Translations under genes and position numbers: made by a program
The notes under the pieces: model-generated
Told to the model about the DNA's origin: nothing
What the model saw: only the letters and a program-made list of their open reading frames with translations
The model's database searches: none
Shown: positions 22,901 to 31,900 of the stretch, piece after piece
Position numbering within the stretch: the first letter of the stretch is position 1
Layout of the letters: each line of letters opens with the position of its first letter
Origin: Macrostomum lignano
Taxonomy: Eukaryota
Length of the DNA: 64,000 nt
NCBI GenBank assembly: GCA_002269645.1
Contig: NIVC01000142.1
Span: forward strand, 434,001-498,000
Reading direction: 5' to 3'

Positions 22901-25900
22901 TACTCAAGCACACAAAATACTCTGTACATTGGCCTTGACTTTCTCGTCGTGTGCATACACCCTTCACACTCTCACTGTCCAGCCTCCCGGAGTCAATGAA
23001 GCGCCGCGTACGCGCCCTAAAGAAGCTGCAATTCCACACTCTGGAAATCGAATCGAATTTCTATCGGGAGCTGCACGCCCTGGAGATGAAATACGCCTCA
23101 GTTCACGCTGAGCAGTTTGACAAGCGCTACAAAATTGTGAAGGGAGAGTACGAGCCGACTGACGCCGAGGCCGACTGGCCCGAGGACTCCGAGGCCGAAC
23201 TGCAGCTGGCCGCTCTGGCTCGCAGCGTCGGCGGAACGACAGAGAAGTCGGCGGCCGCGGCGGCGCAGCTGTCTGATGACGCAAAAGGCCTGCCGGGATT
23301 TTGGCTGACTGTGCTAAAAAATGTCGAACTAATCGGCCAGATGATTCACGAGCATGACGAGCCGATTTTGAAGCACCTGACCGACATCAGGGCCGGCTTG
23401 TTCTCGGGCGACCAGACTGGCTTCACGTTGGAGTTCCACTTCTCACAGAATGAGTACTTCTCCAACAGTGTGCTGACTAAGCAGTACTTCACCCGGATGT
23501 CGCCCGACCGGCGCCAGCCGTGGAGCTACGACGGCCCGGAGATCTACAGATGCCGCGGCTGCGACATTCAGTGGTGCAAAGGCAAGAATGTGACGGTGAA
23601 GATTCTTAAAAAAGTGCAACGCCATCGCGGCAACGGTCAGAAGCGGACGCTCACTAAAACTGTGGAGACCGATTCGTTCTTTAATTTCTTCAATCCGCCT
23701 ACGCAGGGTGAGTTGAAGGACATTTAAATTTTATTCCAGATTAGGCCTAGAGGCCGATTCATCAGCTTATGGATTTTCAGCTACTGGACGCACGCTTAAA
23801 CAAACAAGCCTATATAAGCTAGGTTTTTTTACATTTGCTTGGTAGATGTTATCATGCCCCGACCTAACCTAACTTCTAATATTTTACTAAACGAAAACTA
23901 CTAATAGTAGTTCAAAATGCATATTCGCAATCTCCCCCCCCCTAGTATCCTGAGGGTTTCCTGGTTTATAAGATAAGAGCTTACGATTAATAGCTATGGA
24001 AAATGTGTCCTTTCACTGTAAAAAAATAACTTTATGTGCATGGACCCTGCAAAAGATAAATTCACAATGCTTGCTTCCTTTTTTTCAGCCATTGACGACC
24101 TCAATGATGATGTAAGCTGCGTAATTGTTTTTTGTGTTATTTGACTTAAACTTAGCGCACTTTAGTATCTAATTAGTAACGGAATTTTACTTAACCGCCA
24201 CGCAGGATTCCGAGGTTAGAGCAAAAGGGTTTTATTTTTATCCATATTTTATTTTTTCGTTTTTAACTATTTTAAGTTCTGTTAAATTTCTATATTGTTA
24301 CTTATAGTAGCGTAGCTCGAACTTAAAAGTGTAATTTTTCACTATTGTTTCCTATTTTAAATGCTATAGGACGAGGAGATTGAAAATCTGCTACAGTCGG
24401 ACTTCGAAATTGGGCATTTCATCCGGGAACGAATTGTGTCCAGGGCTGTGCTGTGTTTCACTGGCGAGGGCCTGGACGACGATGATGAGGTTAGAGCATT
24501 CTTGACCTTTAATGTTCTCCGATGTTACCTATTTTTGTGTAAACACTACGAAATCGGTTTGCTACTATTAAGTCAGTAGTACTCAGAAGCGTAGTCTTTA
24601 CAGTGTTGGTTTGGCAACGTAATGATACACCAGGGACGTCTGGATGCCTGGACTGGAAGCAGTGAAGCAGACCGGAAAATATTTCAGGGACGTCTGGACT
24701 CTGGATGCCTGGAATGGAAGTGGGTACCCACCCCAAAATCTTTCAGGGACCTCTTGGGGGTGCCTGGACTAGAAGCGGACCTGTCCATCTCAAAATCTAG
24801 TAGGGACCTCTGATAAATGCTTGGAATGGAAGCGGACCTGCACCTGCACCCCACCCAAAATCTACCAGGGACCTTTAGATGCCTGGACTGGAAGCTGACC
24901 CGCATCCACCTTAATATATATTACCATACCCAATGAAACATCATACGCAGCTGCTTAGATCCATGACTGCCTCCCCCCCCCACGTTGACCTCGCTATTTT
25001 ATTTGCGCATCCTCACCTGCCCAAGTCGCTAATGCGCATATTTAATTAGGCGGACTTGCTGCTGCTCGCATGAGCTCTCCCCCCCCCCCCAGCTGCCCAT
25101 ATCGGAATTATAAACTGCCTGTCAAGCCTGTTCTAGCTTCCAGTGCTTATCAAATTGATAAAAAATTAGAATCCAACAAGTTAAACCGCATGGCTCCATG
25201 TAGCAAGCGAACGATGCATTATCTATTGTCGGCATTGCATCTTAGTCTGCTTCTAGTAGCTGGCAGCAGCAACGAGGCCGCCGATTGTCCGGCAGCCGCC
25301 GACCTGCCAATCGGAGCTGTGTTCGGCCAGTCCATCGGTGACGCAAGAAAACGGAGCGCGCTTCGATTCGCTCTGGCCGACCTCGGTTTCGAACTGGAGT
25401 CACCTGCTGGCTGTCCGGCCGCCGCTCAATCGATACGTCCGCGTCCCCTGGTTGCCATGGTGCCGGACAGGGACGCCGCTAGAGCCTATCTAGCCGCCTG
25501 CGGACTATTAAACACTGGCGCTCTAGCCCTGATCGGCCCTGATCACCCGGCTCTGACTAGCGCCGATCTGGCCGCTATTGCTAGCGCCACTCAGGCGCCA
25601 ATTATCGATCTGAGACCGTCGGAATCTCTGGCGGCACCTGGCCGAGCCGACCAGCCGTCGGCCGCTCCGCCATTCCTGCTGCGTCTGCACCCGCCGCTGG
25701 AGCAGCTGGCAGCCTGTCTGAGCTCCGCTATCGACTATTTCGATTGGCATGAGGCTCTCTACGTGTACGAAGATTTACAAGCCTGGCTCAGGTTAGAAGC
25801 GGCATTGAGGCGTCGAGTTTCGCCTGAGACTCTCTACTTGCGCACTAGGCGGTATTCAATAGCGGCCGGGCCTGAGCCCCTGCTAGCGGAGATTGAAGCC

Positions 25901-28900: not shown

Positions 28901-31900
28901 AGAAATGTCGCTTCAGTTGTCGGTCAAAATTTACGGTTGAAATGTCGCTTGAAAGTTTTAGCTATATTGAGGATTGTCGTTTAAAAAAATCGCTATCGCT
29001 TAAACTGCCGCTGATCCCCGAATCCCGCAGACACTAAAGAACAAATGGTGGAAGGACACGGGCATCTGCGGCGGCCAAGACTCGCAGCAGTCGAAGAATG
29101 CCAATCCACTCGACATGCAGAGCATCGGCGGCATTTTCCTAGTGCTGGTGGGCGGCATCATCGTCTCGACTTTAGTGGCTATCGTCGAATTCGCTTGGCA
29201 CTGGCGGAAGATTCGTCAATCTGGTCAAGTTAACGGCGCCGCCGACCTCTGCAGCCGGATGTGCCAGGAGGCCAAGTTCTCCTTGAACTGCTTCGGCTCC
29301 AGCGAGAAGCCGCAGCCTCAGCGTGCATGCAGCGAGCCGTGCTGCGAGATGCCTCTTCTAGCGTCGCCTCATCATCAGCTGCCGCAATATCAGCACGTGC
29401 CGCCTCCGCCGCCGCCGCCAGTGCCGCCACGGCAAGGTTCCACCTTGTCGCCAAATCCAGCTTGCTACTTCCGGCCTCTGGACATTGGCGGCGGCGGCGG
29501 CGGGTGGCCGGATTTTGACTTCTGACTTATTTTGGTTGTTGCAGTTATCTGCTGTGTGTGTGGGATGGGACTGCGGATATCTGCTGTGTGTGGGATGGGA
29601 CTGCGGATATCTGCTGTGTGTGGGATGGGACTGCGGATATCTGCTGTGTGTGGGATGGGACTGCGGATATCTGCTGTGTGTGGGATGGGACTGCGGATAT
29701 CTGCTGTGTGTGGGATGGGACTTCCCTATATCGAAAATTCACTATAGCTTCTTAAATACAGATTTACGGTAGAACGTGTAAAATTATTTATATTTCGTCT
29801 TTTTTTGCTTTATAATTGCAAATTTATATTCCCTAGCCTTTTATATTACTATAAGTAGTTCTCGCACGCAAGCACATTTATACTGCTTATCAACTCCTTT
29901 TTAAATACATTTCTCACAGTTTGACGACGAAGACGAGGAAGAGGAGGTGCGCAGTGAAAAAAATTGATGCCAATTAAAGTGCAACATGTTCCTTTGGCTT
30001 TGTTGCTATATTGTTGAGTTTGGACTTTACAGCTTTAATTGTTTTTTTTTGTTAAAATGTTCCAGCTTACGTTATTCAAATTTTTTATTCTTTTTTATCT
30101 CTAAAAATCATTTATTTTCTTTTCAAACATTGTGTCAGGATGACGACGGAGACAACGAAGTGAACGACTTTGATGAAGAAGAGGCTGCACAGCAGGTGGG
30201 TGATTTTCTGTGTACAGCTGACAGGTGGGTGATGGGAGTGTCTGTGTACAGCTGACAGGTGGGTAATGGGAGTGTCTATGTACAGCTGACAGGTGGGTGA
30301 TGGGAGTGTCTGTGTACAGCTGACAGGTGGGTGATGGGAGTGTCTGTGTACAGCTGACAGGTGGGTGATGGGAGTGTCTGTGTACAGCTGACAGGTGGGT
30401 AATGGGAGTGTCTGTGTACAGCTGACAGGTGGGTGATGGGAGTGTCTGTGTACAGCTGACAGGTGGGTAATGGGAGTGTCTATGTACAGCTGACAGGTGG
30501 GTGATGGGAGTGTCTGTGTACAGCTGACAGGTGGGTGATGGGAGTGTCTGTGTACAGTTGACAGGTGGGTGATAGGAGTGTCTGTGTACAGCTGACAGGT
30601 GGGTGATAGGAGTGTCTGTGTACAGCTGACAGGTGGGTGATGGGAGTGTCTGTGTACAGCTGACAGGTGGGTGATGGGAGTGTCTGTGTACAGCTGACAG
30701 GTGGGTGATGGGAGTGTCTGTGTACAGTTGACAGGTGGGTGATAGGAGTGTCTGTGTACAGCTGACAGGTGGGTAATAGGAGTGTCTGTGTACAGCTGAC
30801 AGGTGGGTGATGGGAGTGTCTGTGTACAGCTGACAGGTGGGTGATGGGAGTGTCTGTACAGCTGACAGGTGGGTAATGGGAGTGTCTGTGTACAGCTGAC
30901 AGGTGGGTGATGGGAGTGTCTGTGTACAGCTGACAGGTGGGTGATAGGAGTGTCTGTGTACAGTTGACAGGTGGGTGATAGGAGTGTCTGTGTACAGCTG
31001 ACAGGTGGGTGATGGGAGTGTCTGTGTACAGCTGACAGGTGGGTGATGGGAGTGTCTGTGTACAGCTGACAGGTGGGTGATGGGAGTGTGTGTACAGCTG
31101 ACAGGTGGGTGATAGGAGTGTCTGTGTACAGCTGACAGGTGGGTGATAGGAGTGTCTGTGTACAGCTGACAGGTGGGTGATGGGAGTGTCTGTGTACAGC
31201 TGACAGGTGGGTGATAGGAGTGTCTGTGTACAGCTGACAGGTGGGTGATGGGAGTGTCTGTGTACAGCTGACAGGTGGGTAATGGGAGTGTCTGTGTACA
31301 GCTGACAGGTGGGTAATAGGAGTGTCTGTGTACAGCTGACAGGTGGGTGATGGGAGTGTCTGTGTACAGCTGACAGGTGGGTGATGGGAGTGTCTGTGTA
31401 CAGCTGACAGGTGGGTGATGGGAGTGTCTGTGTACAGCTGACAGGTGGGTAATGGGAGTGTCTGTGTACAGCTGACAGGTGGGTGATGGGAGTGTCTGTG
31501 TACAGCTGACAGGTGGGTAATGGGAGTGTCTATGTACAGCTGACAGGTGGGTGATGGGAGTGTCTGTGTACAGCTGACAGGTGGGTGATGGGAGTGTCTG
31601 TGTACAGTTGACAGGTGGGTGATAGGAGTGTCTGTGTACAGCTGACAGGTGGGTGATAGGAGTGTCTGTGTACAGCTGACAGGTGGGTGATGGGAGTGTC
31701 TGTGTACAGCTGACAGGTGGGTGATGGGAGTGTCTGTGTACAGCTGACAGGTGGGTGATGGGAGCGTCTGTGTACAGTTGACAGGTGGGTGATAGGAGTG
31801 TCTGTGTACAGCTGACAGGTGGGTAATAGGAGTGTCTGTGTACAGCTGACAGGTGGGTGATGGGAGTGTCTGTGTACAGCTGACAGGTGGGTGATGGGAG

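Follow-up and report, generated by a model that had tools for sequence, protein, structure and literature searches.

In Macrostomum lignano a NAP1 gene holds, within one of its introns and on the same strand, a complete gene for an ionotropic glutamate receptor (iGluR). The stretch of DNA analysed here, 64,000 nucleotides (nt) long and hereafter called the window, covers positions 434001-498000 of scaffold NIVC01000142.1, such that a scaffold position equals the window position + 434000; over the 16 kb compared (window 19000-35000) it is 100% identical to this scaffold of assembly Mlig_3_7. A first-pass annotation made from the sequence alone had claimed a complete three-exon receptor on the NAP1 strand inside a NAP1 intron, and the exons, the domains and the join in the host coding sequence (CDS) described below all agree with that claim. 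The features of the locus are collected in Table 1, and all coordinates are window positions unless a different scaffold is named.

A receptor gene within a NAP1 intron

When joined, the nine NAP1 exons reproduce the GenBank protein PAA89678.1 (P0241) at 100%, every junction is of the GT-AG type, and the limits of the nested arrangement, with exon 6 ending at 24489 and the acidic tail resuming at 29920, are those originally called. The long open reading frame (ORF) at 22951-23727 contains the NAP domain of exon 3 (PF00956, E 4.6e-80, 269 bits versus a cut-off of 28.6), and the protein is 48-63% identical to animal NAP1L1 proteins. Exon 6 ends in phase 0 with ...FTGEGLDDDDE at the donor GAG/GTTAGA (slashes mark junctions), and the tail that results from joining across the host intron, ...FTGEGLDDDDE/FDDEDEEEE/DDDGDNEVNDFDEEE, aligns with tails from oyster, from a NAP1 paralog and from transcripts of related species. 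It displays the feature by which NAP/NAP1L membership is recognised, an acidic C-terminal tail whose first acidic run is followed by an aromatic residue, and in the transcript-derived NAP1 sequences of related species (P0002, P0003) as well as in oyster NAP1L1 the first acidic cluster likewise continues into aromatic and acidic residues.

Table 1. Position and main characteristics of the features discussed in the text (window coordinates; slashes mark splice junctions)
Feature	Position	Strand	Characteristics
NAP1 (BOX15_Mlig025134g1)	19868-32571	plus	GenBank CDS
NAP1 CDS exons 1-3	19868-19949, 20072-20192, 22983-23707	plus	GT-AG junctions
NAP1 CDS exons 4-6	24089-24111, 24206-24214, 24370-24489	plus	GT-AG junctions
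NAP1 host intron	24490-29919	plus	5430 nt, phase 0, acceptor CTCACAG/; holds entire iGluR
Upstream spacer	24490-25213	plus	724 nt, candidate promoter or outron
iGluR exon 1	25190-26299	plus	signal peptide, most of amino-terminal domain; ANF_receptor 1.2e-16
iGluR intron 1	26300-26916	plus	617 nt, phase 0, CAG/GTGAGG...CCCAG/, mostly TC-rich low-complexity repeat
iGluR exon 2	26917-28521	plus	535 codons, both ends phase 0
iGluR intron 2	28522-29030	plus	509 nt, phase 0, CAG/GTGAGT...CGCAG/, mostly 24-bp tandem repeat (28537-28930)
iGluR exon 3	29031-29525	plus	TLKNKWW, M4, cytoplasmic tail, stop TGA 29523-29525
Downstream spacer	29526-29919	plus	394 nt; 30-bp tandem repeat 29546-29722, then ~200 nt near-invariant
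NAP1 acidic-tail exon 7	29920-29946	plus	encodes FDDEDEEEE
NAP1 acidic-tail exon 8	30139-30195	plus	encodes DDDGDNEVNDFDEEEAAQQ
NAP1 acidic-tail exon 9	32560-32571	plus	encodes ARH, then stop
gypsy-type LTR retroelement	~8.7-16 kb (about 8700-16100)	minus	domains
ANAPC4	33867-39184	plus	GenBank locus
SAP/Tho1-domain gene	39498-40559	minus	GenBank locus
Junction-like array	30207-32506		68 copies
Junction-like array	34173-34843		22 copies
Junction-like array	2313-2575		12 copies
Junction-like array	58213-58476		5 copies
Junction-like array	59247-59807	minus	20 copies

The GenBank models of Mlig_3_7 were obtained by genome-guided assembly of RNA-seq data (StringTie, TACO) and not ab initio (PMC5730564), and it is these RNA-seq-derived CDS models, not individual reads, that constitute the evidence for the host join. 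They connect 24489 to 29920 in the window, and the same ...DDDDE/FDDEDEEEE/DDDGDNE... join is made at two homeologous loci (P0241-P0243). To form NAP1 mRNA, exon 6 (24489) is spliced directly to 29920, whereby the whole receptor is removed as an intron. The doubts that NAP1 might end before 25000 and that the acidic-tail exons might form part of another gene can be set aside: the CDS models at the homeologs share the join, the paralog model makes the equivalent one, and the RNA-seq-derived CDS joins the tail exons to NAP1. Upstream of the host intron, the RNA-seq-based models include a 9-nt microexon (24206-24214, GATTCCGAG, encoding DSE) that the older UniProt models lack. The sequence around its donor, GAG/GTTAGAGCA, matches that of exon 6 (24489-24500) over 12 nt, and both donors carry a T at intron position +3 and so depart from the M. 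lignano consensus GT[G/A]AG.

The three exons of the guest, joined from the ATG at 25190, encode 1069 amino acids with the sole stop at the end. Exon 2 encodes the end of the amino-terminal domain, the ligand-binding segment S1, M1, the pore loop (MQQG), M3 (SYTANLAAF) and S2, with Pfam matches to Lig_chan (2.5e-40) and Lig_chan-Glu_bd (1.1e-28); M4 and the KNKWW motif lie in exon 3, and the overall order ANF_receptor, Lig_chan-Glu_bd, Lig_chan, SBP_bac_3 is the one expected. Among PDB structures the kainate receptors GluK2, GluK1 and GluK3 match best (E ~1e-105), and the segments SYTANLAAFLTVE, TLMQQGS, TITYERERVIDF, GGSTEAFF and FLMESAMIEY align with annelid and bivalve receptors; the Arg, Ser-Thr and Glu positions within these motifs we take to be the agonist contacts of GluK2. 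By its sequence the guest is a kainate-type ionotropic glutamate receptor, which would be expected to carry a glutamate-gated cation current. The originally proposed span of 25190-29525 stands as far as its coordinates are concerned, and the start codon probably has to be shifted: because codon 7 counted from the ATG at 25190 is TGA in both homeologs, translation more likely begins at the second ATG, 25214, which opens into the signal-peptide-like MHYLLSALHLSLLLVAGSS.

Age and origin of the nested pair

The two homeologous scaffolds, NIVC01000888.1 (L003, P0242) and NIVC01001326.1 (L004, P0243), show 94-96% nucleotide identity. The closest M. lignano NAP1 paralog, BOX15_Mlig006736g2 (P0001), is 63% identical and spans 20 kb; in its locus (L001) the exons at 22382-22498 (...GEGLEDED) and 28233-28253 (YESEDDE) flank an intron of 5734 nt, within which an intronless iGluR ORF of 1039 amino acids (24472-27591, same strand) is 52% identical to the window receptor. 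An iGluR in the same order and orientation is accordingly found within the equivalent NAP1 intron on four scaffolds, namely the window, its two homeologs and the paralog. The two nested receptors are sister sequences, with 73% core identity to one another versus at most 66% to any other match, and a neighbour-joining tree groups them as a pair; since they are each other's closest relatives, host and guest were duplicated together. Oyster NAP1L1 has an intron at the same position (...EQDDD/FDEEGEEE/...), which is 323 nt long and empty, so that the receptor entered an existing intron and its insertion did not create one.

Comparison with outgroup genes bears on how the guest came to be there. 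In the covered part of an annelid kainate-type gene (Paralvinella) nine introns were mapped, in a bivalve gene (Potamilus) seven, and at least four intron positions are common to both; none of these occurs in either of the nested M. lignano receptors. The introns of the window receptor follow ...VYDAAQ and ...RDQELQ, where the outgroup exons are uninterrupted, the position of intron 1 having been compared with both outgroups and that of intron 2 with the bivalve only (the annelid model is truncated). With the two introns taken out, the window sequence again aligns exactly with that of the intronless paralog. At the site of intron 1 the paralog reads GTT CAG GTG CTG and the window GCT CAG/GTGAGG...CCCAG/GTG CTG, with CAGGTG at both ends of the intron, and at the site of intron 2 GCAG is repeated; the CAGGTG direct repeat is suggestive, though partly expected from the splice-site consensus. 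Intron 2 measures 509 nt in the window, 1403 nt in L003 and 1547 nt in L004.

The most economical account of these patterns is that the guest originated as an intronless retrocopy which would later have gained two introns in the window lineage. A less economical course, which we regard as possible, is that both introns were gained before the duplication and then precisely lost in the paralog; whichever account of gain and loss is followed, neither intron of the window receptor is parental as judged by the outgroup genes. The first-pass annotation had left the choice between retroposition and intron loss, and the intronless paralog together with the absence of the outgroup introns sharpens this to retroposition followed by two intron gains. 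No poly(A) remnant (A-run) and no flanking direct repeat of the kind left by target-site duplication is visible at the window or paralog locus, which is only weak evidence against a retrogene because such remnants are expected to be lost after this much divergence. Among the matches listed there was no other M. lignano iGluR, including an intron-bearing parent, the genome itself not having been directly searched. A transposon origin of the introns is unsupported: a 12-nt imperfect inverted repeat occurs in intron 1 only and none in intron 2, and the 24-bp unit of intron 2 is found nowhere else in the window.

Constraint, expression and competing readings

A nucleotide alignment of the three homeologous iGluR copies gave ratios of nonsynonymous to synonymous substitution rates (dN/dS) of 0.18-0.29 overall and of 0.09-0.23 in the ligand-binding and channel core, with an excess of synonymous changes (binomial p 1.3e-6 to 3.5e-5). 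The paralog and window receptors, at 52% identity, both still have open frames of more than 1000 codons. On the strength of the homeolog dN/dS values the receptor is probably functional and under purifying selection, and since intron 1 precedes the constrained core, removal of the introns has to preserve the reading frame.

With regard to expression, the annotation is silent: none of the four RNA-seq-annotated GenBank loci, the repeat-free intronless paralog included, has an iGluR gene model, and NAP1 is annotated at all of them. The annotation pipeline dropped novel transcripts below 0.5 RPKM (reads per kilobase per million) and those overlapping repeats, and its TBONE step cuts transcripts at experimentally mapped spliced leader (SL) and poly(A) sites (PMC5730564). 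In view of this filter an unannotated receptor fits low or cell-restricted expression, which is no proof of expression. The spliced receptor protein, with either start, and the paralog ORF have no exact match in a collection of 15 billion proteins; a word-based homology search with exon 1 (amino-terminal domain) returned nothing at E<=1e-5, and a search for transcript support with exon 2 matched only a cluster of chimeric UniProt models. Absence from the protein collection says little about expression because the NAP1 cluster, too, is without a transcript-assembly member. In the paper texts and M. lignano paper supplements searched, the identifiers Mlig025134, Mlig026373 and Mlig006736 were not found, and the literature searched yielded no description of the NAP1/iGluR locus and nothing relevant on same-strand nesting combined with trans-splicing.

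The spacers on either side of the guest hold candidate processing signals. In M. lignano 30-39% of the genes are trans-spliced and polycistronic units occur (PMC8629364, PMC5730564), and the SL acceptors of the species conform to the motif [T/C]TNCAG (PMC8629364). Two features upstream of the receptor are kept in the homeologs, a C-rich tract that closes with CAG at 25092 and, at 25138-25143, a TTCCAG; the latter fits the motif and lies 47 nt before the ATG at 25190 and 71 nt before that at 25214, which is weak evidence because the motif occurs four times in the 724-nt spacer. Divergence of this spacer among the homeologs is ~2-3% versus a synonymous rate of 3-4.5%, and as it is not clearly below that rate it provides no evidence for or against a promoter. 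Neither AATAAA nor ATTAAA occurs in the 394-nt downstream spacer of any homeolog, which has only AATACA at 29755 and 29904, and the downstream spacer of the paralog (641 nt) holds two AATAAA. The earlier expectation that NAP1 transcripts must bypass a poly(A) signal of the receptor is therefore not borne out by any evident canonical signal in the window copy, though it could apply to the paralog. The segment 29723-29919 differs by one substitution and one 2-nt indel across the three homeologs, where ~8 differences per pair would be expected neutrally, and is a candidate 3'-end or branch-site element.

The host and its downstream neighbour show SL-like features of their own. The annotated partial-CDS 5' ends of NAP1 and ANAPC4 lie 1-2 nt past AG acceptors (cTTGCAG/a at 19860-19868; CCTCAG/c at 33860-33867), and because these ends adjoin such acceptors the sequence suggests that both genes may be SL trans-spliced, perhaps as one polycistronic unit. 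From the NAP1 stop to the 5' end of ANAPC4 there is 1.3 kb, 549 nt of which is tandem repeat, and the two genes could fall within the published SL-operon distance (<1 kb without repeats).

We give a probability of about 0.6 to the reading that the receptor, a nested gene of retrogene origin over which NAP1 splices, is expressed autonomously, be it weakly or in a narrow range of cells. A processed copy of a kainate-type receptor would have been inserted, in the sense direction, into an ancestral NAP1 intron of phase 0, between the exons of the NAP domain and those of the acidic tail, before NAP1 was duplicated in the Macrostomum lineage; the pair would then have been copied as a unit, and the receptor of the window lineage would later have acquired two phase-0 introns, now filled with tandem repeats. 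Its mRNA would start inside the host intron, at a low level or in few cells (neurons would be expected), and the conserved TTCCAG may serve as an SL acceptor at which its 5' end is trimmed. Where NAP1 is transcribed, the splice sites and 3'-end signals of the receptor would be spliced over. An autonomous receptor is preferred because a by-product of the NAP1 pre-mRNA should have been assembled and annotated at the four loci.

Several observations weigh against this reading. The expression, promoter and mRNA ends of the receptor are all features that we infer from the DNA, and the missing canonical poly(A) signal is not easily reconciled with full transcriptional autonomy. The outgroup test of intron gain rests on two species for intron 1 and on one for intron 2. 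The window iGluR evolves faster than that of the paralog, its cytoplasmic tail evolves neutrally (dN/dS ~1), and its M3-S2 linker reads ELVVMP where relatives have ERMVSP, the Arg after TVE being replaced by Leu. Finally, the L003 homeolog carries a nonsense codon in S2 (K820*, AAG to TAG), the other copies being intact. An older-assembly model of the L003 allele type has Lys at codon 820, and the nonsense codon may reflect either an assembly error or, the genome being partly duplicated, a genuine null allele.

In the main rival scheme the receptor would have no promoter of its own and form a nested operon with its host, NAP1 transcripts being either cis-spliced to yield NAP1 or SL trans-spliced, at TTCCAG or CCCCAG, to yield the receptor; the 3' end would be made by cleavage before 29920, or the NAP1 tail exons would serve as 3' untranslated region (UTR), with one product per pre-mRNA. 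The prevalence of SL trans-splicing and the polycistronic units of this species speak for such a scheme, as do the AG acceptors at the 5' ends of NAP1 and ANAPC4, by which the locus already looks SL-processed, the conserved match to the acceptor motif upstream of the first ATG, and the lack of AATAAA before 29920, which is in keeping with a 3' end common to both; a retrocopy in sense orientation and devoid of a promoter would moreover need a rescue of this kind. However, the cis donor at 24489 competes, and SL addition normally needs an acceptor without an upstream donor (PMC8629364); NAP1 was assembled at four loci, yet no TBONE-cut receptor is annotated at any of them, and the acceptor motif is short and recurs in the spacer. 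On balance we consider the scheme doubtful. It is likewise a tentative idea that SL trans-splicing turned a promoter-less sense retrocopy into a working gene, in which case competition between cis-splicing across the intron and trans-splicing inside it, whether or not a 3' end is also formed there, would pick chaperone or receptor. The guest introns would, on the same doubtful premise, be recent gains flanked by short direct repeats, and their phase 0 would make in-frame chimeras possible.

That the receptor is a silent relic, an unexpressed retrocopy that decays slowly and is conserved through inertia, appears improbable to us. The lack of annotation at loci modelled from RNA-seq and of a matching protein in the collection would be as expected, as would the nonsense codon of L003, the neutral tail, the missing canonical poly(A) signal and an ORF twice interrupted by tandem repeats. 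Such decay is hard to square with ORFs of more than 1000 codons left intact in two paralogs, with the significant synonymous excess among the homeologs and with the interruptions themselves, which have GT[G/A]AG...CAG ends, lie in phase 0 and leave an exact alignment to the intronless paralog when removed; the exons past them are the most constrained (dN/dS 0.09-0.23). Still less credible is a true fusion of NAP1 and receptor in one chimeric protein, as the UniProt models A0A1I8J9X4 and A0A1I8H829 would have it. Because all three introns, that of the host and the two of the guest, are in phase 0, inclusion of receptor exon 2 as an in-frame cassette would give an open chimera of 926 codons, but the models use cryptic sites within receptor exons instead (28009 and 29177; joins 24489/28009 and 29177/29920) and lack everything from the signal peptide and amino-terminal domain through S1 and M1 to the pore loop. 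No receptor sequence is contained in the more recent models guided by RNA-seq at three loci, and a cytosolic or nuclear chaperone joined to half a membrane channel is implausible. We reject the older models A0A1I8J9X4 (P0206), A0A1I8H829 (P0244) and A0A1I8IFV1 (P0245) as evidence for such a protein; they are in-frame, cryptic-site NAP1-iGluR-NAP1 chimeras or read-through of the exon-6 donor and look like prediction artefacts. The chance that a misassembly put the receptor inside NAP1 is next to nil. The genome is repeat-rich and partly duplicated, and tandem repeats lie near both ends of the receptor, but order and orientation are shared by four independent scaffolds, among them that of the old paralog with different flanking repeats, and the window is identical to its GenBank scaffold; the misassembly feared in the first-pass annotation is thereby rejected.

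The locus in a wider context

The genome of M. lignano is rich in repeats and part of it is duplicated (PMC5730564), and tandem arrays are conspicuous at this locus. In 5 of the 16 large arrays of the window each unit holds a splice-junction-like CAG/GT[AG][AG]G (Table 1). The 34-bp array at 30207-32506 fills the last NAP1 intron and repeats the exon 8 junction ...CAGCAG/GTGGGTGAT, and the array at 34173-34843 repeats the ANAPC4 exon 1 junction ...CCTACAG/GTGAGGCC. These two begin exactly at an annotated exon end, so that such introns carry dozens of tandem donors or AG/GT 'ratchet'-like sites; their units of 34 and 31 nt are not multiples of three, and copy number varies between homeologs. 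No description of junction-like repeat arrays was found in the literature searched. The 5' introns of NAP1 and the sequence upstream of it (20330-20810, 21357-22409, 18790-19594) are mostly tandem repeats too, consisting of 21-bp units and a (GTTA)n array of 1 kb, which shows that introns filled with repeats are common at this locus and no peculiarity of the receptor. About 4 kb upstream of NAP1 lies a gypsy-type long terminal repeat (LTR) retroelement with a GC content of 58-64% and long open frames, whose domains comprise a gag with a CCHC knuckle, reverse transcriptase/RNase H and integrase.

The analysis has consequences for annotation as well as for the study of gene structure. The GenBank annotation of M. 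lignano misses at least two kainate-type receptor genes, together with the homeologous copies of each, and the UniProt entries A0A1I8J9X4 and A0A1I8H829, as false NAP1-receptor fusions, are unfit to serve as evidence for a fusion protein. The locus offers a datable case in which an intron that is empty in oyster was apparently colonised by a sense retrogene, the pair was duplicated and one copy would have gained introns at proto-splice sites; sister copies that differ only by introns are rare and useful for the study of intron gain. As both SL trans-splicing and transgenesis are available in M. lignano, direct tests are possible of how a host avoids the signals of a sense guest, and the locus could show whether trans-splicing can free an intronic gene.

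The arrangement has parallels in several known systems. In the cholinergic locus, VAChT/unc-17 is nested on the same strand within the first intron of ChAT/cha-1. Both cases have a complete sense guest in a host intron, spliced over, long conserved and with few or no introns. The cholinergic pair, however, belongs to one pathway, is co-expressed and has one or more common 5' exons and a promoter in common, whereas NAP1 and the iGluR are functionally unrelated, the guest occupies an intron near the 3' end of its host, and no exon common to the two is apparent. Sense intronic retrogenes are also known in mammals and Drosophila, some of which later gained introns; like these, the receptor is missing all parental introns, has the orientation of its host and is under purifying selection. 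Unlike these, the pair survived duplication as a unit, the two new introns are in the coding region and not in UTRs, no poly(A) or target-site remnant is recognisable, and the SL trans-splicing of M. lignano provides an extra route to independence.

With the SL operons of M. lignano and nematodes (PMC8629364, PMC5730564) the locus shares the common strand, a probable shared pre-mRNA and AG acceptors at the 5' ends of neighbouring genes. Operon genes run in series, in contrast to the iGluR, which sits inside an intron, and because the guest lies within the host intron a cis donor competes with the SL. As a protein the receptor resembles GluK1-3 in its full domain set, SYTANLAAF and MQQG motifs and conserved ligand-contact positions, and departs from them in a very divergent amino-terminal domain, in long insertions there and in S1, in ELVVMP instead of ERMVSP and in its length of 1061-1069 amino acids. 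The NAP1/iGluR pair is thus a new example of known arrangements, the same-strand nested gene and the retrogene, and not a new kind of system.

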